This document shows, one piece after another, positions 2,048 to 28,406 of a stretch of DNA of 64,000 bases. Each line of letters opens with the position of its first letter. Within the stretch, counting starts at the first letter, position 1. Where the stretch lies: sequence record LC727695.1. One strand, written 5' to 3'. The notes below the pieces were generated by a model that had not been told where the DNA came from, did not search any database, and saw only the letters and a list, made by a program, of their open reading frames with translations. The position numbers were made by a program, and so were the translations under genes.

Positions 2048-3691
2048 TTATTCTGCTTGGAATTTAGTGTTAATTACACTATTATAAAGTCCAGTTGCAG
2101 TATTTGCGTAACGCATTGCTTCACGAATAATGGAGTCATGTTTAGGTGCACTATCTGTAATAATAGATGCTACCTTACGTGATACTTCTTCGATCTGTTC
2201 TTTAGAAACATCGTCGATTTTATCACTCTCTAGTTTCCGTGAAAGTTGATCAACATCATCTTCAAGTTGCTTAATGGCTTTAACAATATTCCGACCGCCA
2301 GTGATAACATCAGCTGCATCATCAACCAGATTACGTAGAGCTACCGCTTCTTTCTTAGCTTGACTCTTATCAAAGTTCTTTAAAGTCACTTCAGTGCCAG
2401 GTTCTGCGGCTGTCTCATCATCCGTTAGATATACTTGAGTAGCAGTCGTAGTTACAAGCTTATTACCCGGTAAAGTGTTAGATGTACTAGCGTAGTGTTT
2501 GAGAGGTCCATCTTGAAGTTTGTCCATCTTCTCAACTAGTTCACTAGCATCATTACGCTCTGGATCCCAAGCTTTAAGCACAGTACCAATATTCGTTAGG
2601 TAGGTAGCATAGTCTTTTGCATATACAGATGCCATCCATTTAACGATAGGGCCATATCCAACGTTAGCTGAAGGCTGAATGAATTTACCATTAGCAAATA
2701 CGGGTCCACCATTTTTAACAGGAACCGTTAATTCACTGGGTATATTTTCAAACTTAGCATTTTGGATAGCTAAAATGAGTTCATCAACTTTTACACTCAC
2801 ACGCGGTACACTATTCTTAAGACTATCCCATACGTGGCTAATAATTTCACGTAGTTTAGCAATAGCTTTCTTGATATAAGCAAGCGCCTTACGACTTAAC
2901 TCTTTAATATCCTCAGTTGAAATCTTAACTGGATATAAATGACTTTTACCACCAGTCGTATAGTTTTCTAATGAGCTAGTTAAAGTATTATCACCAAGTA
3001 CATGACGATGTGGTAAGAGTGCAGAATGAATAAATGCAGCTGTACTTTGACTGATACCATTAATACCAGCTTGTCGAACAAGAGCTTTAATCGACTCTAG
3101 GGCATATGCGGTATTTAGACCTTGATTAATATCTTGCACTGCTGTAGTAACTACTTGTGCATTACCAATGTCCATGAAATCAGTAGGTTTATCCATATCC
3201 ACTGCAACAGCGATCTGTGGCACCACGCCATTATGCGCTAGTGGAATAGAACTATCTTTGGCAGCCTGATCAGCGATTTGCTGAGTTACTGTTTCACCAC
3301 CTTGTGGTTCCTCTCCTTCGGCACCTGCTGGAATAACTGTTTCAACAGCAATATTAGGTTGTTCAGGAATAGGGGGTACTTCTGTTACTACATCTGTTTC
3401 AACTACGGTAACTGGTACAGCTGGTTGTTCAACTAGAGTAGCAGCTGGAGTCTCAACAATAACGCCATTATTAGGAGTATTAACAATAGTGGTATCTGCA
3501 TCCACTGGTGCAGTTGGTGTTACACCAACATTATTGTCAGTCACATCTTGAATAGTATTTTCAGGTACAGCGTCTTCAGAAATACAATCGCCACTAGTCA
3601 TGGCTGCTACTTTATCAACTGCTGTTTCAGGAATAGGTACCTCAGTATAGTCTTCTAGACTATCTAGATACTCATTGAGTTTAAATGTCAT
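2048..3691 (-). CDS. Inner-body protein, phiKZ internal head protein family (gp95-like)
   Basis: 547 aa, acidic propeptide, AGINGISQSTAAFIH motif, ISTE|DIKEL site. Confidence 0.8.
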   Translation of the reverse strand: MTFKLNEYLDSLEDYTEVPIPETAVDKVAAMTSGDCISEDAVPENTIQDVTDNNVGVTPTAPVDADTTIVNTPNNGVIVETPAATLVEQPAVPVTVVETDVVTEVPPIPEQPNIAVETVIPAGAEGEEPQGGETVTQQIADQAAKDSSIPLAHNGVVPQIAVAVDMDKPTDFMDIGNAQVVTTAVQDINQGLNTAYALESIKALVRQAGINGISQSTAAFIHSALLPHRHVLGDNTLTSSLENYTTGGKSHLYPVKISTEDIKELSRKALAYIKKAIAKLREIISHVWDSLKNSVPRVSVKVDELILAIQNAKFENIPSELTVPVKNGGPVFANGKFIQPSANVGYGPIVKWMASVYAKDYATYLTNIGTVLKAWDPERNDASELVEKMDKLQDGPLKHYASTSNTLPGNKLVTTTATQVYLTDDETAAEPGTEVTLKNFDKSQAKKEAVALRNLVDDAADVITGGRNIVKAIKQLEDDVDQLSRKLESDKIDDVSKEQIEEVSRKVASIITDSAPKHDSIIREAMRYANTATGLYNSVINTKFQAE

Positions 3692-3778: not shown

Positions 3779-5296
3779 TTATTGGCCATATCTTTCTAAT
3801 TCCATATTACAAACAGCATTTCGTTGCTTTGCAATACGTAATAGGTAACTAATTAGTGTTGCGTATTCTGGTGACATATCGGTAATAAAGCCATTAACTA
3901 AAGATATAATCTCATTTGCATCATCACGAGCACCTTTCCAAATAGCTTTAGACCTACGTAGCTCCATGTCCTCAATGCCCTGTGCAACCTTCTTCAGTTG
4001 TTCAAGGACATCTTTTTCAGCTTTAAATAGATCACCTAAACGACGAATAGCTTCTTTATTAACTTCTAATGTTTTACGCACTTCAACAGGCGGCCTTGGC
4101 TCGATCGTGATTGTATCTGGACCATCACCATGTTTATCTTCACCAAGTCGTGGAGCATATTTATCTTTCTGGAATATAAGTTTACTATTACCAGGTAGAG
4201 AAGTATCTTTTACTTTATCTAACTGATTAGCTTCACCAATAAATTCAAAAGCCTCTTTAAACTTATCTAGTTCATTATCTTCTAAGTCGTAGTCTTTAAT
4301 TAATTTAACTACTTTATCAATGTTTGATCTAGCTATATTTGGCCATTCTTTAGCTAGAAATTGACTAACTTTTGTTTCATTAGTTAAATCGTCTAAAACA
4401 AATTCATCACCAATGAATAACATTTTAGGATTGTCAATTTTAATTGACATATCAAAATCAGGTGTTACCCTTTCATTTGATACAGTTGGCTTATTGATTA
4501 AACTTTTCGCTTTTTCAATTAACTCATCAGTTTTATCTTCAACTGATTTGATTCCAGTTAGTACACGCTGTGCCGCTACTTTAGCTTGTTCAATAACATG
4601 GACTATTAAAGCAAGTATCTTTTTACCTATACTTTCAATACGTTCTTTTATTTCTTCTTGAGAAATATTTACAAAACGCATAGCGCTGCTAGGGGTTGCA
4701 TTAAAATCTTCAATACTAATCTTTTCAAAGCCGATAAGCTTATCAATTGATTCTAATGTAACGTGCATAAAAGCAGCTGATTGTTTAGTAATACCTCTAT
4801 CACCAGCGGTATTTAATAAATCTATAAAACATTCTAAACTAGTACGCGCATGCAGTAATTGATTTAGCTGATATGTCATGTTTTGAGATGGAGGTGTATC
4901 ATACGCAAAGATATTTAAATGATCATCATCACTATCTAAATCTTTACCATCCACTGGTGTAGGTCTATTATCAGGACTTTCTCGGGTATCATGGGGTGAT
5001 GCTGGATATTCTTCTGATGCGACGTATGTTTTACCAAATGAATCAACTTCAGTAACTAAACCACGATCTGATTTCCAATGGATATTAGGTTTATGTGCTT
5101 CTTCAACATCTAACCCATTATTAGTTGCTTTTACATCATTTGGTAATTCATCAATTAATTTGGCAGCTTCTTCTGGTTCTTTAGATATTTGCTTGTCGTC
5201 TGTAGCAGCGTGCTTTAGTTTGGCTTTCGCGACTTTTTCTTTTACTTCGACAACACCATAACCTTCTAAACTATCAAGTAACTTATTTAAGTTCAT
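3779..5296 (-). CDS. Internal head protein family (gp94-like)
   Basis: 505 aa, MNLNKLLDSLE start, AGDRGITKQSAAFMH motif, ISQE|EIKERI site. Confidence 0.8.
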   Translation of the reverse strand: MNLNKLLDSLEGYGVVEVKEKVAKAKLKHAATDDKQISKEPEEAAKLIDELPNDVKATNNGLDVEEAHKPNIHWKSDRGLVTEVDSFGKTYVASEEYPASPHDTRESPDNRPTPVDGKDLDSDDDHLNIFAYDTPPSQNMTYQLNQLLHARTSLECFIDLLNTAGDRGITKQSAAFMHVTLESIDKLIGFEKISIEDFNATPSSAMRFVNISQEEIKERIESIGKKILALIVHVIEQAKVAAQRVLTGIKSVEDKTDELIEKAKSLINKPTVSNERVTPDFDMSIKIDNPKMLFIGDEFVLDDLTNETKVSQFLAKEWPNIARSNIDKVVKLIKDYDLEDNELDKFKEAFEFIGEANQLDKVKDTSLPGNSKLIFQKDKYAPRLGEDKHGDGPDTITIEPRPPVEVRKTLEVNKEAIRRLGDLFKAEKDVLEQLKKVAQGIEDMELRRSKAIWKGARDDANEIISLVNGFITDMSPEYATLISYLLRIAKQRNAVCNMELERYGQ

Positions 5297-5327
5297 TTAC
5301 AATTCCTCAAGAATACTTAATTACATA

Positions 5328-5362
5328 GCATAAGAGGAACCCCGAAGGGTTCCTCATTATGT
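5328..5362. terminator. GC-rich stem-loop
   Basis: GAGGAACCC/GGGTTCCTC stem with CATAA/TTATG flanks. Confidence 0.7.
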
Positions 5363-5365
5363 TTG

Positions 5366-6673
5366 TTACTTCTCATCATTCTCAGGTGCTTTAGAAGTTT
5401 CTTTGCCGTACGCAGCTAATTCATGTTTAACAATAAATGTATACTGCGCAGCGATGCATTTAGCAATATAGTTAACTAGTGCACTATTATCAATACCACC
5501 AATATTCAGTGCATCACGCGCTGTTTCTTTTGACATGCCTGCTTCGTCAGGATTCCAATCAGCTAGGGCCTTTTCAAGATTCTCAGCAATCTTGTAATCA
5601 ATCTTATTAAAGTCCTGTAGTTTAATAACAAGACCTTTAAGAATATTAAGATGTGCTAAGATTTTACTCGGTGCACGGACATCAACTTCAACTTCATGTA
5701 GATCCGTTTCCCCATCACCCTCAACAACTTCCCACTTATTCACACCTGACTTAGAAGAAGTAACTTCTAACTTAACATTACCAGGAGCTTTCTCAACGGC
5801 TTTATTAATATCTTCAGCCATCTTAGCTTGTAAATCACTGGTGACTTGATCAATATCAATAGACTTGTCACCTTTGAGATAACGTACTCCAAGTTCGCCA
5901 TATTTCCTAAGAGCAGATACATACTGAGTTGAGAATACAGTCATGAAGTCTGCAATAGTCTTCGGATTATTTGCAATAAAGCCACTACTAGATACCATAT
6001 ACTCAGAAGGAGTGAACTTAATCTCTTCTTTCTTTAGATCACCGGCTTTGAGTGATTTAATAGCATCAATAGTTTTAGTAATACGCATATCGAGTGCAAT
6101 CAGCTTAGGATTAAAATCTTTAATCTTCTGCTTTATCATTGCAACAATTTTCTTGATAATCTCTAAAGCTTTCTTACCTGCTTCTTTTAGTTTCTCTTTG
6201 AGATCCTCAAGAGAGATAACAGCTGCTTTCTGAATAGCGCTGCGTGGAGAAGCATCGTAATTCTCAAGCGCGGCAGTGAGTCCAGATTTTTCAATACCTA
6301 GGATACGATCGATTGATTCCATGCCAACATGCATGAAGGCAGCTGCTTGTCGAGAGATACCATCTTCACCAGCTTGAAGTAAAAGACCTTGGAACTTTTC
6401 AAGTGCTTCTTTAGCATCTTCAATTAGCCCTAATTCATCTTCAGCTTGAACAATAGTTACTTCAGTATCTAATGCAGTTGGTTGAATAGCATCATCTGCA
6501 TCAAGAACTTCTTCTACGGGATTATTTTCAATCTGATCTACTTCTGCTAAAACGGATGATACATCAGCAGAAGTTTTATTTTCAACGACTAATTCAACAT
6601 CACCATGAATCGTAGTGCCTTGATCTTCAATTGATTCAAGTGATAGTTTGTCTAGCATTTTAAGTAGAGACAT
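5366..6673 (-). CDS. Inner-body protein (gp93-like)
   Basis: 435 aa, AGEDGISRQAAAFMH motif, ISLE|DLKEKL site. Confidence 0.8.
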   Translation of the reverse strand: MSLLKMLDKLSLESIEDQGTTIHGDVELVVENKTSADVSSVLAEVDQIENNPVEEVLDADDAIQPTALDTEVTIVQAEDELGLIEDAKEALEKFQGLLLQAGEDGISRQAAAFMHVGMESIDRILGIEKSGLTAALENYDASPRSAIQKAAVISLEDLKEKLKEAGKKALEIIKKIVAMIKQKIKDFNPKLIALDMRITKTIDAIKSLKAGDLKKEEIKFTPSEYMVSSSGFIANNPKTIADFMTVFSTQYVSALRKYGELGVRYLKGDKSIDIDQVTSDLQAKMAEDINKAVEKAPGNVKLEVTSSKSGVNKWEVVEGDGETDLHEVEVDVRAPSKILAHLNILKGLVIKLQDFNKIDYKIAENLEKALADWNPDEAGMSKETARDALNIGGIDNSALVNYIAKCIAAQYTFIVKHELAAYGKETSKAPENDEK

Positions 6674-6678
6674 GTTAA

Positions 6679-8001
6679 TTACCTTACCTGGGAGGGATTA
6701 TTTACTTGTTCTTGCGTAGGTCTTTGAATTGGACGCTGGTAAGCTTTTAATTCTAACTCGGTCACGAATACTAGTCGACCCATTACTCTGACTAAACCAG
6801 CAAGAGCATTACTAAAATCTGTTACAACGCGACTTACATTATTGATCATTAATGTAATTGAATTAATGATATTTGAGATAGCAGGGATGCCATCAGGTGC
6901 ATCAGGATCTTGAACTTTTGCTTGACGATTTCGCATATTAGATTGTTGTGCCCGAATCCTACCAGCTTGTTGACGATTAGTCTCGGCTAACTGCATTAAC
7001 CTACCAAATTCAAAATCTAGTTTAGTTGCATAATCTTTTCTAGCATCTATACGTTTAGCCATTTCGCTTAATAATACTAACCGTCTTCCAATTGAACTCG
7101 TATCATTAACCTTAAAGGTATTGTTACCTTCAGGTGCATCCTTCATAGTAGGAATAGTATAAAACTTAAAGGCAAAATCACGGACAGTATTTACTAAAAA
7201 ATCCCAATCCCTGATCTCTTCAGTCTGTGTTTCAGTTGGCCCTGCGCCAAATAAAGTCTTATTACCTTGAACTGGCATACTACGATAAACTGTAGAACTT
7301 ACTCTAAATCTATCATCTTTCTTAATAGGTACTGCACCCTTCATCCAGTTCTTAACATTAAACTTACTAAAGTCTTGTGCAGCTCTATCAGTCCATTTTT
7401 CATCAAATGATAATTTCCTAAGGATATCCGCTACAGATTGGATATACAAGAGTAGGGATTTATCATAGAAAGCTATCAAGTTGTTAACTTGCATGAGTAT
7501 CGGATCAACTGTAGTCGGTTCGAATTTACCATCAATACTAAATCGTTTAGTATTTTTAAATTTTAATTCTTGCTTAAATGGCTCATGCTTAATATTTTCA
7601 GCTCTTTCTAAAAGCATGTTTATTCGTTCAAGAGTACGTTGATTACCTTGTGTAATAACACGTGCATACTCTTTTAACTCATCTCGATGCTTTGCTTGGG
7701 ATTTTTTCATTTCATCCCAGGTATTTCGTGCTGTCTTAGATAGGTCTTCTAATGACACATTCTCAGTTTTTAGAATGTGTTCACTAACAACATCTTGGTT
7801 ATCTGCATATTTTTGAAATAAGCCATCGGTATAGGTTTTAACTAAAATGTCTTTTTCAGTGCATTCTAATCTACTTTGAATATCTTCAATTGATGGCAAT
7901 AATTCTTTTAGATATCCATCGCATGTAGCGATCATATCGACGGGGCTGTCCCCGTCGATTGATTCAAGTAAGACCGAATGACTAAGTGAATTATTAGTCA
8001 T
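6679..8001 (-). CDS. Internal head protein (gp92-like)
   Basis: 440 aa, VSLE|DLSKT site, C-terminal helical region like paralogs; synteny. Confidence 0.7.
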   Translation of the reverse strand: MTNNSLSHSVLLESIDGDSPVDMIATCDGYLKELLPSIEDIQSRLECTEKDILVKTYTDGLFQKYADNQDVVSEHILKTENVSLEDLSKTARNTWDEMKKSQAKHRDELKEYARVITQGNQRTLERINMLLERAENIKHEPFKQELKFKNTKRFSIDGKFEPTTVDPILMQVNNLIAFYDKSLLLYIQSVADILRKLSFDEKWTDRAAQDFSKFNVKNWMKGAVPIKKDDRFRVSSTVYRSMPVQGNKTLFGAGPTETQTEEIRDWDFLVNTVRDFAFKFYTIPTMKDAPEGNNTFKVNDTSSIGRRLVLLSEMAKRIDARKDYATKLDFEFGRLMQLAETNRQQAGRIRAQQSNMRNRQAKVQDPDAPDGIPAISNIINSITLMINNVSRVVTDFSNALAGLVRVMGRLVFVTELELKAYQRPIQRPTQEQVNNPSQVR

Positions 8002-8010
8002 AGATAGTCC

Positions 8011-8556
8011 TCAGTCCTTATCTATTACTTCTACAGATCCAAATAGTAGATGTAGGGTATACATTAGATCATTCATACCGTTTTTGTGTTTAACCCAATT
8101 CTGGATCATTGAAACAGTATCTAGATCTAATTTTAACTCATTAAAGAGAGTAGCAATTTCAGCGCGCGGTTCAATGAGTTGTGCACCAGCATCTGGTTCA
8201 GTAGCTAGTAACATTGGCCATTGGGTAATTGAAATACGTCGATGACCCGTAGCAATGTATCGAACAGTATCTAATAGGAATTGATAATTATAACTATCAA
8301 TATTACTATTATTGTCCTGTAGAATAAACCAATTATAGTTTCCGCTAAAAAGACGAATAGCACAAGCTAGAACTTTCTTATGGAATTCCCAATATGCAGT
8401 TTGTGCAGGAAAGTTGGTAAAGATAAGATATAGTTCTTCAACTTGAGGATCACCGGGACGAGCAGTGAACCGTGAAATGGCCTGTTGTTGACCACCTGAG
8501 TAATTACGACCAAATGGGCGTACAGCATTAGTTGCTGGCATATCAATGCCCTCCAT
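8011..8556 (-). CDS. Conserved hypothetical/virion protein (gp91-like)
   Basis: 181 aa ORF; GGAGG spacing favours the ATG at 8541 (MPATNAV). Confidence 0.6.
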   Translation of the reverse strand: MEGIDMPATNAVRPFGRNYSGGQQQAISRFTARPGDPQVEELYLIFTNFPAQTAYWEFHKKVLACAIRLFSGNYNWFILQDNNSNIDSYNYQFLLDTVRYIATGHRRISITQWPMLLATEPDAGAQLIEPRAEIATLFNELKLDLDTVSMIQNWVKHKNGMNDLMYTLHLLFGSVEVIDKD

Positions 8557-9488
8557 TAGTGACCAAGAGATAGTAGATCACGATGGTTAGCAAAGAACTC
8601 AGATGCGCGATCTTGGATCATACCTAGGCGATAGTTATAATCAGAGATACGAATTTCATACTCTTTAATAAGCTTCTGTAGGCGTGCATCCACTTTACCA
8701 TTACTTTGCATTTCCCGCATTTCTTGTAAACGTAGTTGAAGTGCAAGGAATTCTTGCTCAGCTTCTTTAAAACGTTCAACCTGATACTCAGCTAAGAACT
8801 TGCCAAATAGCACGAACGGGTTCTGACGAGGTGAGAAGCCATCCATGTTAAGTGGATCACGTTGAGCTATAGAGAGAGCACTCACAGCTACATCATAAGT
8901 ACCTTCATTGACTTCAGCACTAGATGCACGACTTAAGCGTTGTTTCAGTTCATTAGTCTTAAGACTCATTGCTGGATACAGAGTAATGAATTGCGCCATA
9001 TTAGTGTATAGCCATTCTTTCTCAGCACGAGATGATTTTAATTCTGTAGCCTTACCTAATTTCATTGCTTCTTGTGCAATTAGATTTAGTAGTAGTTTAC
9101 GGCCATAACGAATATAGAAACTAAGACCATCAACAAAACGTAACATGTTTGCACGGTCAAAGGTTAGATTAGAGTTAGTAAACTGAATAGCAAATAAACG
9201 CCGGATTTCGCTTTCGATCATATCAAAGCTACCACGAATATTTGAAAGAGTATCCAGTACTAGTTTAATCGGTTCAGTATTAAAACTAATCGCTCGCCGT
9301 AGTTCAGTAGATAACCGCATACCTAAATCTGATTTAAGTTGCATATTACCAAATACTTCACCTACATCGTCAATAATTGGTGCGAGAGTTGCATCATATT
9401 CTTCACGTAATGAACGGATTTGATTTAATAGTTCACGACGTTCAGTAACTGGTGCGAGTTCACGTACATAATCAATAATTCTCATCAC
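8556..9488 (-). CDS. Major inner-body/head protein (gp90-like)
   Basis: 310 aa helical protein with C-terminal coiled coil; synteny and size. Confidence 0.7.
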   Translation of the reverse strand: MMRIIDYVRELAPVTERRELLNQIRSLREEYDATLAPIIDDVGEVFGNMQLKSDLGMRLSTELRRAISFNTEPIKLVLDTLSNIRGSFDMIESEIRRLFAIQFTNSNLTFDRANMLRFVDGLSFYIRYGRKLLLNLIAQEAMKLGKATELKSSRAEKEWLYTNMAQFITLYPAMSLKTNELKQRLSRASSAEVNEGTYDVAVSALSIAQRDPLNMDGFSPRQNPFVLFGKFLAEYQVERFKEAEQEFLALQLRLQEMREMQSNGKVDARLQKLIKEYEIRISDYNYRLGMIQDRASEFFANHRDLLSLGH

Positions 9489-25550: not shown

Positions 25551-25643
25551 AAATGTGTTAAATATATGTTGAACTAATCATTTTTTCATTTGTCAATTTA
25601 TATTGGCAAATATTAAATTAAGCCTCTATCGGAGTATAACAAG

Positions 25644-26138
25644 ATGTCAAATAAAGCTAAAGAACCAACTCTAACTAAAGAACAGGAAAAGACTCTACGT
25701 CTATTTGAACGTGCAGTTGGAGCATCAGCTGCCGCAGCTGATCATATTCTTAACCGTGATGGTTGGGATGTTGTCAATGTACTAGCAGGTTCCGTAGGTA
25801 AACGTATTCTACAAACTGAAGTATTCATTAATCCAGTTATCAATAAGATCAATGAAATCATTCCGACGTTATCTGATCCTACTGGATTCCAAAAGAACCT
25901 ACAAACAGTTATTGCTGACCTTAATCGACTAACTAAAATTATCAGTGTCCTATATGCACAACATCAAGGTAAGGCTGGTCCAGCAAATAATGAAGATGAA
26001 CTAAAACTCATCAGTGAACTTGTTACTAAATACACTGGTATTGAAGGTGCTATTGAACGCGGTATTGATGGTGTAATCCTAGCGATGATCGGCACTCTTC
26101 GAGAAGCTGGTTGGGACGAAAAACTAATTCAACAATAA
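25644..26138 (+). CDS. Hypothetical protein (gp78-like)
   Basis: 164 aa ORF with GGAG ribosome-binding site. Confidence 0.65.
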   Translation: MSNKAKEPTLTKEQEKTLRLFERAVGASAAAADHILNRDGWDVVNVLAGSVGKRILQTEVFINPVINKINEIIPTLSDPTGFQKNLQTVIADLNRLTKIISVLYAQHQGKAGPANNEDELKLISELVTKYTGIEGAIERGIDGVILAMIGTLREAGWDEKLIQQ

Positions 26139-26149
26139 TGGAGTTTTAA

Positions 26150-27751
26150 ATGGCTACTGCTGACTTCGATAATGAGTACGATGATACTCCAGAAGAGAAT
26201 TTACTAGATCAAATTGATGAGATCAATGCGCAACACGATCCTGACTCTAGTATTGAAAATAATGACGAGGTGGAAACTCCACCTTTCGTTCCTGATCAAA
26301 AAGAAATTAAACTACGTATTCCACGTAATGCTAAAACTGGAAATATCCGGGATGCTTCTGAACCGGCTATTAAAGATAGTGCTAGCATTCTTACTTTACT
26401 ACGTGAGAATCCCCAGACTGTTTATAATTTCCTGGATCACAATAAAGAACTATTTAAAGCATTTGCTGATAATAAAGTAGATGACACTAGTGACGGTGTA
26501 AAGTGGACAGCTGCTATTCTGGAAGGCTTAGCTCACTCTATTGTTGAAGATGCACCAATCGGTGCAACTGCCCGAGAAGGTTCTGAATGGTCTAGTGAAA
26601 TTCCTTATGGTGAAAAGATCATTCGACCTGGCCGACCTGTATTTAATACCAATGGTCGTAAAATGACCGATGATGAAACTCTAGTTTTCCTAACACGTAA
26701 AGCTAACATCGGTACGCCATATGATACTTTCCTACCTCATTCAGGTATTTGGGTAAAACTACGTGCACCTACTGGTACTGAAGTAGCTGCCCTACAAGCA
26801 CGTCTAGCACAATTAAAGATCCGGCTAGGCGCTGAATCAAAAGGTATGCTGTTCTCAAACATGGCAGCTGTGTTACTTAACATGGTTAGTAGTTTAGCAC
26901 TTGCATGTGTTATTCAATCCAACTATAAGTTCAACACCCCAACTGATCTAGAGCATGTTATCTCAGTAGCTGATGAGCCGTTCTTGCATCACGCACTAGC
27001 GGCGACTATGTATCCAGATGGATTTAATTATAGTTATCCATGCATTGCAGATGCCAATACATGTAACCATATTGAAACAGCGAAACTTAATATGTCAACG
27101 CTTGTTCAATATGATCTACTGGCATTCTCAGAAGAACAAAAGAAATATATTGCACGTAAGTTTAATGCATGTACTGAATCTGATCTTAAGACTTATAAAG
27201 AAGGATTCCGTATTGAAACTCAAGTAACTGAAATGTTTGGTGACGTTGGTGTTGTTCTTGAGATGTGTACAATTGCTGATCGCCGAGAGTCTGGTGATAG
27301 TTGGATTAACTCAATTATCGATATGACTCAAGGTAGTTTTAATGAACCAGTCGATGGTCCGCAACGTTCTCAGTATATTGCACGTTTACAAAAGATCTCT
27401 ATTGCCCGTCAGTTCTCACATTTTGTTAAAGAAATTAAAGTACGTGAAGATGACGATGGTGAAAGTTCTGAAGACAATATTCGTACTGCAACCACTAATC
27501 GTGAAACTATTGAAAAGTTCTTAACTAATATTCTATCCACACCGGAATATAATGACCGCTTTATTAATGCGGTGAGTAACTTCATTGATTCACAACTAAT
27601 TGGAATGATTGCAATTACAAGTTGGAATTGTCCAGTATGTGAGTCACCTGCTGCTACTAAATTTAAAGAACGTTTCCCACACTTAATCCCTATTGACATG
27701 CTGTCAACTTTTTTTACTTTGGCGGCCTCGAAGTCAAACCGGATGGTGTAG
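26150..27751 (+). CDS. Probable tail/baseplate-hub assembly chaperone (gp77-like; G-type)
   Basis: 533 aa, WVKLRAPT..E motif and C-terminal CPVC similar to T4 gp26-type chaperones; ends just after a TTTTTTT run. Confidence 0.5.
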   Translation: MATADFDNEYDDTPEENLLDQIDEINAQHDPDSSIENNDEVETPPFVPDQKEIKLRIPRNAKTGNIRDASEPAIKDSASILTLLRENPQTVYNFLDHNKELFKAFADNKVDDTSDGVKWTAAILEGLAHSIVEDAPIGATAREGSEWSSEIPYGEKIIRPGRPVFNTNGRKMTDDETLVFLTRKANIGTPYDTFLPHSGIWVKLRAPTGTEVAALQARLAQLKIRLGAESKGMLFSNMAAVLLNMVSSLALACVIQSNYKFNTPTDLEHVISVADEPFLHHALAATMYPDGFNYSYPCIADANTCNHIETAKLNMSTLVQYDLLAFSEEQKKYIARKFNACTESDLKTYKEGFRIETQVTEMFGDVGVVLEMCTIADRRESGDSWINSIIDMTQGSFNEPVDGPQRSQYIARLQKISIARQFSHFVKEIKVREDDDGESSEDNIRTATTNRETIEKFLTNILSTPEYNDRFINAVSNFIDSQLIGMIAITSWNCPVCESPAATKFKERFPHLIPIDMLSTFFTLAASKSNRMV

Positions 27752-28212
27752 TTAATGATCTGAGATATAGTCGTCTTGAGGCCACTTTCAAGGAAGATAG
27801 TGGTCACATCCTACATCCAAACTTTGGTTATGATAAGTTAACTGAAGATGATACACACTTAGATAGACTATTATCGACAGTAGGGGCAGTAAGACCGTCT
27901 ACAGCAGCACGTTTAACAAGAGAAGCATATCTACTTGATTACGATATCGGTTCACCAGAAAACGGACCCATGTGGTTAAATAAGGTAAATCCTAAAGAGG
28001 ACTTTATCGAAGGTGGGTTGAGAAGGAGACTGACTAGAGATTTCTTCAAGTATAAAGTAGGTAGCTTATCTAATATGTCATTAACTGAATTCTTTGAATT
28101 AGCTTATTCTGAGGTAGAATACATAATTGAATTATGTAGAAATATTACCCATAATGAAGCTGTTAATAACAATAACCAGTTAAATGAATTAAACAAGCCG
28201 TTAACTAAATAA
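27709..28212 (+). CDS. Start-less -1 frame extension (gp76-like; T-type chaperone C-terminus)
   Basis: Frame open from 27697 to the stop at 28212 with no ATG/GTG/TTG before 27970; reachable by -1 slip at T TTT TTT (27709-27715); contains MSLTEFF. Confidence 0.6.
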   Translation, partial: FFYFGGLEVKPDGVVNDLRYSRLEATFKEDSGHILHPNFGYDKLTEDDTHLDRLLSTVGAVRPSTAARLTREAYLLDYDIGSPENGPMWLNKVNPKEDFIEGGLRRRLTRDFFKYKVGSLSNMSLTEFFELAYSEVEYIIELCRNITHNEAVNNNNQLNELNKPLTK

Positions 28213-28223
28213 AAAAAAATAAA

Positions 28224-28259
28224 GACAGGCCCCTCTCCATGTGGAGAGGGGTTTATGTC
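28224..28259. terminator. Bidirectional terminator
   Basis: CCCCTCTCC-ATGT-GGAGAGGGG between convergent ORFs, A-tract upstream. Confidence 0.8.
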
Positions 28260-28262
28260 GCC

Positions 28263-28406
28263 TTACTTACGTGCAAAGCTAGCTACAAGACCTTTGATAG
28301 CTAGAGCGACCATCCAGGCCGTTAACCCCTTCATTGGGCGGATATCAACCCGTTCTTCGATATCCAGATTGCCCTCACTATTGATTACCTCAATTCGTAC
28401 TTGCAT
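28263..28406 (-). CDS. Uncalled 47-aa protein
   Basis: AAGGAG RBS then MQVRIEVINSEGNLDIEERVDIRPMKGLTAWMVALAIKGLVASFARK*; bounded by hairpins. Confidence 0.6.
   Translation of the reverse strand: MQVRIEVINSEGNLDIEERVDIRPMKGLTAWMVALAIKGLVASFARK

Follow-up and report, generated by a model that had tools for sequence, protein, structure and literature searches.

Comparative evidence for a probable programmed -1 frameshift at the 3' end of gene 77 in phiKZ-like giant phages

A stretch of 64,000 nucleotides (nt) from sequence record LC727695.1 (the window) contains gene 77 of a phiKZ-like giant phage, which carries a run of seven T residues near its 3' end and is followed in the -1 frame by a long open stretch, in which an annotated gene begins only well inside. 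This locus raises the question of whether gene 77 encodes a single protein of 533 amino acids (aa), or whether a fraction of the ribosomes slips on the T run and continues into the second frame. The first-pass annotation of the window had proposed such a slip and had labelled the two products a G/GT-type tail chaperone pair. Comparison of the locus across divergent phages provided strong evidence for the first part of this proposal, a programmed -1 frameshift that joins gene 77 to the part without a start codon, but not for the tail chaperone label. Positions 25600-28300 of the window matched 47 Phikzvirus records with 95-100% identity, and the window belongs to Phikzvirus.

The heptamer and its conservation

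The zero-frame open reading frame (ORF) of gene 77 (PHIKZ077, 533 aa; 26150..27751, + strand) matched phrog_4585 with an E value of 7e-196. Direct reading of the DNA confirmed that it contains a U-only heptamer (seven T) close to its 3' end, in the X XXY YYZ phase of the ORF, and the zero-frame stop was found 11 codons past the heptamer. The same reading confirmed an open -1 frame at 27697..28212 (+ strand; 171 codons) that contains no ATG, GTG or TTG for 91 codons, or 85 codons when counted from the heptamer; the first such codon is the ATG at 27970. In the recoding region at 27697..27751 (+ strand), which contains the in-phase heptamer, the zero and -1 frames are both open. From the heptamer on, the -1 frame encodes an extension of 165 aa, and the open stretch matched phrog_12109 (E = 8e-24). 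In the existing annotation, only an 80-aa ORF (PHIKZ076.4; 27970..28212, + strand) is called within it, and this ORF starts at the ATG mentioned above.

The first-pass annotation had advised a check on whether the run holds seven or eight T. A 141-base query over the site matched 47 of 47 Phikzvirus records without a length change. These assemblies come from many laboratories, and the site is not a sequencing artefact; a homopolymer miscall was rejected for the window on the basis of this constant length.

We read the junction in 26 lineages, namely the window, eight Pseudomonas phages of other genera, six metagenome contigs and 11 other phages (Xoo-sp14, RSL2, RAY, SPN3US, phiEaH2, FBKp24, Proteus phage 10, Vibrio phage Yong MS31, Aeromonas phage LAh10, Halocynthia phage JM-2012 and Bacillus phage AgentSmith). 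Apart from the metagenomes, the hosts spanned Pseudomonas, Xanthomonas, Ralstonia, Erwinia, Salmonella, Klebsiella, Proteus, Vibrio, Aeromonas and Bacillus. Twenty lineages were tabulated in full and six more were added later, and the two frames were kept apart in all searches by stopping or starting the queries at the heptamer. The gene 77 proteins showed a median pairwise identity of 21% at the amino acid level, and 20 lineages had less than 60% amino acid identity to one another.

An in-phase N TTT TTY/A was present in all 26 lineages (TTT TTY in general, T TTT TTA in the Bacillus phage), and the first base of the heptamer was the canonical T in 17 of them. In particular, the protein of Bacillus phage AgentSmith reads V-F-L at this place, and its heptamer lies one codon further downstream but retains the canonical form, T TTT TTA, in phase. 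Among the 20 tabulated lineages, the zero-frame stop was located 8-21 codons past the heptamer, and the -1 piece from heptamer to stop measured 154-176 aa in all but one (19/20); the six lineages added later had a whole open -1 frame of 153-191 codons. The in-phase heptamer and the open -1 frame, whose conservation the first-pass annotation had named as a check, were thus found far beyond the group for which it had been proposed. Judged from the compared sequences, their joint occurrence is more than chance.

The F-F pair encoded by the heptamer is itself a protein motif that is present in 190 of the 194 family members, so that codon choice is more informative here than residue identity. TTT was used as the first Phe codon in 25 of 25 lineages, whereas a control Phe column contained 8 TTT and 13 TTC. 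At the locus of Xoo-sp14, which has a G+C content of 59%, TTT accounts for one of 16 Phe codons and occurs at the site alone, and in RSL2 it accounts for two of 20, both of which are at the site. Given the usage of each lineage elsewhere in the gene, the choice of TTT had a log10 P of -13.6 when independence was assumed. Additionally, synonymous-site identity was 0.60-0.64 in segments over the site, compared with 0.43 gene-wide.

The -1 extension

A tblastn search with the -1 piece revealed homologues in 68 Pseudomonas phage records. In the PA1C-like phages, Psa21, Phabio, PhiPA3 and Noxifer, the alignment begins at the first residue past the heptamer, and these matches are in the -1 frame and directly 3' of the gene 77 homologue. 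The extension pieces of RSL2, RAY, SPN3US and AgentSmith all matched phrog_12109, the family of the window, with E values of 7e-6 to 3e-45. A word-indexed homologue search with the extension alone returned one partial protein only; the search worked when the alignment was used as the query.

The alignment of the extension revealed several conserved motifs upstream of the ATG annotated in phiKZ. The first ATG, GTG or TTG was found anywhere from codon 8 to codon 87 in the 20 tabulated lineages, and in phiKZ and the Bacillus phage it is preceded by 85-87 codons of homologous sequence. No Shine-Dalgarno (SD) sequence was present before the PHIKZ076.4 ATG at 27970.

Selection was assessed by pairwise comparison of the segment that follows the zero-frame stop and ends at the first start codon. 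In the five closest pairs (201phi2-1 with Viktualia, three metagenome pairings, and SPN3US with phiEaH2), the proportion of nonsynonymous differences (pN) was 0.07-0.24 and that of synonymous differences (pS) was 0.44-0.84. The ratio of nonsynonymous to synonymous substitution rates (dN/dS), where computable, was 0.11-0.16, which is the range of the remaining extension. Two more distant pairs, which are near saturation, gave a pN of 0.29-0.43 and a pS of at least 0.71, and the comparison of the window with its closest metagenome relative gave a dN/dS of 0.29 for the startless stretch. As these substitution patterns indicate, the startless stretch codes for protein under purifying selection. 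We read PHIKZ076.4 as the C-terminal half, or tail end, of the extension and not as an independent gene. The suspicion of the first-pass annotation that the 80-aa call is truncated agrees with the conserved motifs 5' of the ATG, the selection on the startless stretch and the lack of an SD sequence.

A HMMER search against 1.84 billion representatives identified 1684 clusters of the gene 77 family (approximately 1,700, at 50% identity), and the best 150 of these all end with the profile. In the 194 aligned members, the zero-frame protein ends 8-37 residues past the F-F pair (median of 13), and no in-frame fused form was present among them. None of the 25 annotated public records has a joined or slippage feature at the site, and in these records the downstream ORF was called with starts yielding 45 to 182 aa. 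The site is not known to have been described for phiKZ-like phages, and no description was found in the literature searched, which included phiKZ gp77 and jumbo phage frameshifting. Literature matches to "gp77" were set aside, as they concern the gene numbering of other phages.

Three individual records are of separate interest with regard to the extension. In Erwinia phage RAY, the extension is annotated as gp266 (locus 2532-3080) with a start placed 136 nt inside gp267, upstream of the heptamer, which shows how gene callers handle the missing start. Pseudomonas phage RVTF4 (PQ015378.1) is the sole record of the 26 lineages in which the extension frame is interrupted; there is one change of frame, past which the extension domain continues as an ORF annotated separately in a different frame. 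The interruption may reflect either a mistake in assembly or a genuine split. A 96-aa "hypothetical protein, partial [Klebsiella pneumoniae]" from a 288-nt contig showed 90% identity to the extension of the window and is probably phiKZ-like phage DNA in a Klebsiella data set.

Frameshifting and its alternatives

We consider a programmed -1 frameshift, by which gene 77 of phiKZ-like phages would be recoded, to be the best explanation of these comparative results, and a probable one. Most ribosomes would stay in the zero frame and end 11 codons past the U-only heptamer, giving the 533-aa protein. A fraction would slip back by one base as the two Phe-tRNAs re-pair on U UUU UUN, and the slipped ribosomes would then read the -1 frame for 165 codons, giving a second protein of approximately 686 aa. 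In place of a short C-terminal helix, this long form would carry a linker and a helical domain. We infer that the slip is ribosomal rather than transcriptional and that the phage requires the two products at a defined ratio; the efficiency of the slip may be low, because no conserved stimulatory element was found.

Several observations weigh against this explanation. The F-F protein motif accounts for part of the conservation of the heptamer, which leaves codon choice and the first base as the only arguments for a signal, and the first base is A or G in 9 of the 26 lineages, which would weaken re-pairing in the P site. Early start codons are present in the extensions of 201phi2-1 (TTG, codon 8), Psa21 and one metagenome locus (ATG, codons 17-18), and independent initiation of the extension is possible in lineages of this kind. 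No conserved stimulator was detected: the 70 nt past the heptamer were no stabler than shuffled sequences (mean z of -0.28 over the 26 lineages), RNAalifold predicted 0 pairs in 13 Pseudomonas-clade sequences, and no SD-like box was seen upstream of the heptamer. The weak hairpin that the first-pass annotation had placed after the site is accordingly not conserved. In the Pseudomonas clade, the first ~20 nt past the heptamer are strongly conserved at the nucleotide level because both frames are coding there. Finally, proteomic or ribosome-profiling data on the trans-frame protein were not found in the literature searched. A stimulatory element, whether a downstream structure or an upstream SD-like box, is common in -1 frameshifting and is not obligatory.

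The same two proteins could also arise by transcriptional slippage, in which the phage RNA polymerase stutters on the T run and produces mRNAs of altered run length. The T run comprises 7-8 bases in 16 of the 26 lineages, these phages use unusual multisubunit polymerases whose subunit genes adjoin the locus, and the failure to find a ribosomal stimulator also fits this mechanism. However, the run is merely 5-6 bases long in the other 10 lineages, and 5-6 T are short for productive stuttering by known polymerases such as bacterial RNA polymerase. Moreover, the preference for T as the first base and the codon-shifted, canonical X XXY YYZ heptamer of the Bacillus phage fit tRNA re-pairing and not run length. 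We regard transcriptional slippage as improbable.

A further explanation takes the annotation as it is: there would be two separate genes, the downstream ORF would start at a non-canonical codon or by re-initiation after the gene 77 stop, and the heptamer would merely reflect the F-F motif. The annotation of 201phi2-1 gp135 with a TTG that overlaps the gp136 stop is consistent with this, as are the starts located 17-24 codons past the site in Psa21, RSL2 and one metagenome locus and the retention of F-F as protein in nearly all family members (190/194). However, Viktualia, which is close to 201phi2-1, lacks that TTG, and the position of the start is not conserved among lineages (8 to 87 codons), nor does an SD sequence precede the annotated ATG. 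TTT was chosen in 25 of 25 cases against the usage of each genome, and the homology of the downstream piece starts at the first codon past the heptamer. In phiKZ and the Bacillus phage, 85-87 selected, homologous codons precede the first ATG, GTG or TTG, and independent initiation cannot explain these two. As a general account of the locus, we consider two separate genes quite improbable.

An artefact or decay is extremely improbable; in the first case a miscalled homopolymer would have cut a single long gene in two, and in the second the downstream ORF would be a degenerating leftover. In favour of this explanation, homopolymer runs are error-prone in some sequencing chemistries and RVTF4 has one further interruption of the extension frame. 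Against it, the length at the site is equal in all 47 independent Phikzvirus assemblies, the two-frame layout is found in 26 of 26 lineages with 0 of 194 members fused in frame, and the extension is under purifying selection.

If the programmed frameshift is real, all of these genomes are mis-annotated at the locus, with the extension entered as a small ORF of its own whose start is arbitrary. The phiKZ gp077 protein is the Chimalliviridae core gene cg18, one of roughly 70 core genes of nucleus-forming phages, and is named "hypothetical protein" in the supplement table of PMC10299810. In the excerpt of that table covering this entry, cg19 (gp079) comes directly after cg18, and the extension ORF is not listed beside cg18. 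The gene 77 family is also present in relatives of the nucleus-forming phages. A real frameshift would thus mean that the extension is missing from the core-gene list beside cg18 and that a core gene has a second, longer product that is absent from proteomic databases. It would also mean that phages of hosts from Pseudomonas to Bacillus have retained a U-only heptamer for which no stimulator can be detected, which would make it a natural case for studying the minimal -1 slippage signal in bacteria. The existence of two forms, probably of an assembly factor, would offer a handle on the function of this core protein.

Relation to known systems and genomic context

We compared the gene 77 locus with known systems that produce two proteins by frameshifting. 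It resembles lambda G/GT and P2 E/E+E' in that ribosomes would slip by -1 at an in-phase heptamer located a few codons short of where the upstream ORF stops, in that a fixed share of a C-terminally extended protein would be made from one mRNA, and in that the extension lacks a start of its own. The P2 pair also has a T-rich heptamer. As in lambda, the comparative evidence is for a -1 frameshift near the 3' end that would yield a C-terminally extended product. In contrast to lambda G/GT, the upstream product is 533 aa long here, compared with about 100-150 aa, and gene 77 is not flanked by the tail tube gene and the tape-measure gene. It is surrounded by the genes for gp78, the head protein gp79, the helicase gp75 and subunits of RNA polymerase, and the synteny is the same at all loci, which upholds the caveat on gene position given in the first-pass annotation. 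Neither piece matched any tail-assembly-chaperone family in Pfam, NCBIfam or PDB sequences. A G/GT-type tail chaperone pair is therefore not supported, given the position, the size, the family membership and the lack of a fold analogue in the PDB.

In E. coli dnaX (tau/gamma) and T7 gene 10A/10B, two proteins that differ at the C terminus are made from one gene by a -1 slip, on a homopolymeric heptamer. The proposed products of gene 77 share this general layout but have no homology to either protein. The dnaX slip, unlike that proposed for gene 77, yields a shorter protein and is driven by two elements, an SD-like box upstream and a hairpin downstream; neither was found here. The most fitting place for gene 77 is among the programmed -1 frameshifts, as a new example from a giant-phage gene that is widely conserved.

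When searched apart, the two pieces had no match of any kind in Pfam, NCBIfam or PDB sequences, and in PHROGs they matched only families of unknown function. The first-pass annotation had seen a likeness of a CxxC motif to T4 gp26-type proteins and of a segment of the extension to P2-type extensions. Searches with the proteins of the window themselves gave no named match, such that neither likeness was upheld.

The AlphaFold2 (AF2) model of gp77 had a mean predicted local distance difference test (pLDDT) score of 78 and a predicted template modelling (pTM) score of 0.80, and the protein contains the conserved cysteines C298, C305, C494 and C497. A Foldseek search of this model against the PDB revealed no analogue (best E = 2). 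Against BFVD, giant-phage homologues came first, followed by models of 250-284 aa named "baseplate hub assembly protein, bacteriophage T4-like" or "...chaperone". These latter matches are weak and are themselves to predicted models, with E values of 1.5e-4 to 2.5e-3, target-normalised template modelling (TM) scores of 0.52-0.59 and root mean square deviations of 6.7-10.8 Å. The model of the extension was poor (pLDDT of 59), with only the last ~65 residues confident and helical, and it had no match in the PDB; its alignment lacked the startless part because the public gene calls are truncated.

The T4 proteins were compared by sequence as well. From the T4 region, whose accession is cited in PMC12929587, gp26 and gp51 were combined with five relatives each into a 12-sequence family alignment, and hhalign was run twice, the second time with a 194-sequence gp77 profile. 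T4 gp26 and gp51 matched the same Pfam family, PF12322 (T4_baseplate), with E values of 9e-64 and 4e-52, and are thus paralogues. In contrast, the window protein and seven relatives had no PF12322 match, and hhalign between the gp77 family and T4 gp26, gp51 or the family alignment gave probabilities of 1.3-5.9%, which are not significant. The link to T4 gp26/gp51, which comes from predicted folds, is a weak lead.

There are nevertheless features in common. Four conserved Cys are found in both families, T4 gene 26 also has two annotated products (gp26 and the internal 26'), and one Bacillus phage homologue of gp77 is named "putative baseplate hub assembly protein". The differences are that gp77 is twice the size, that its Cys pairs occur in another order and with another spacing, and that gene 77 is not beside hub genes, which in T4 are 25, 27, 28 and 29. 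Furthermore, the second product of T4 gene 26 arises by internal initiation with no frameshifting. In the T4 record, genes 26 and 51 (locus 7803-9229) are divergently transcribed neighbours, with 26' annotated as an internal product of gene 26, and the gp51 homologue in one Acinetobacter phage record is called "tape measure protein assembly chaperone".

In 201phi2-1, the phrase "identified using mass spectrometry" is attached to the neighbour gp138 but not to gp136 or gp135; this is indirect, but hints at a non-virion protein. Because of this hint and the weak fold likeness to T4-like hub assembly models, our tentative guess is that gp77 might act in assembly, possibly of the baseplate hub or tail, without being part of the virion. 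It is a more doubtful idea that the long and short forms of gp77 might serve in giant phages as G and GT do in lambda, but with a hub-assembly fold like that of T4 gp26/gp51. In that case the frameshift product, made at a fixed ratio, would use its C-terminal helical domain to attach the chaperone to the hub, tape measure or tube during growth. If true, this would link the T4-type hub "catalysts" with the lambda-type frameshifted chaperones, which have so far been held unrelated, and would give a function to core gene cg18.

Upstream of gene 77, the window contains a gp78-like ORF (PHIKZ078, 164 aa; 25644..26138, + strand) that matched phrog_14050 (E = 9e-75). It is a conserved neighbour in the same operon, and at every locus retrieved the gp77 homologue is preceded by an ORF in the equivalent place. 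A GGAG is located 10 nt 5' of its ATG, and a GGAG also precedes the gp77 start. Downstream, a G+C-rich hairpin with nine pairs, seven of them G-C, is found at 28230..28251 and is terminator-like on both strands. It lies 18 nt past the stop of the extension, and none such is placed at the gene 77 stop. This hairpin is likely the end of the gp78-gp77-extension transcript, and its placement counts in favour of the frameshift. It also separates the rightward gp78-gp77 block from a leftward block of small ORFs.

Some names at these loci deserve comment. Just past the hairpin, a 47-aa ORF on the - strand (window 28263-28406) corresponds to PHIKZ076.3, whose homologue in phage Churi, Churi_gp258, is named "baseplate hub protein"; this name looks unfounded because the ORF is so small. 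The gp77 homologue of LAh10 (locus 1294-2889) is named "putative ZipA-like cell division protein" and the ORF in the gp78 position of JM-2012 (locus 953-1357) "metallophosphoesterase", and nothing seen in our analysis backs either name. In PA1C, the gp75-type helicase is present as two consecutive ORFs (locus 5151-6438, - strand), both named "putative RAD2/SF2 helicase", and it is a single ORF in phiKZ, PhiPA3 and 201phi2-1.

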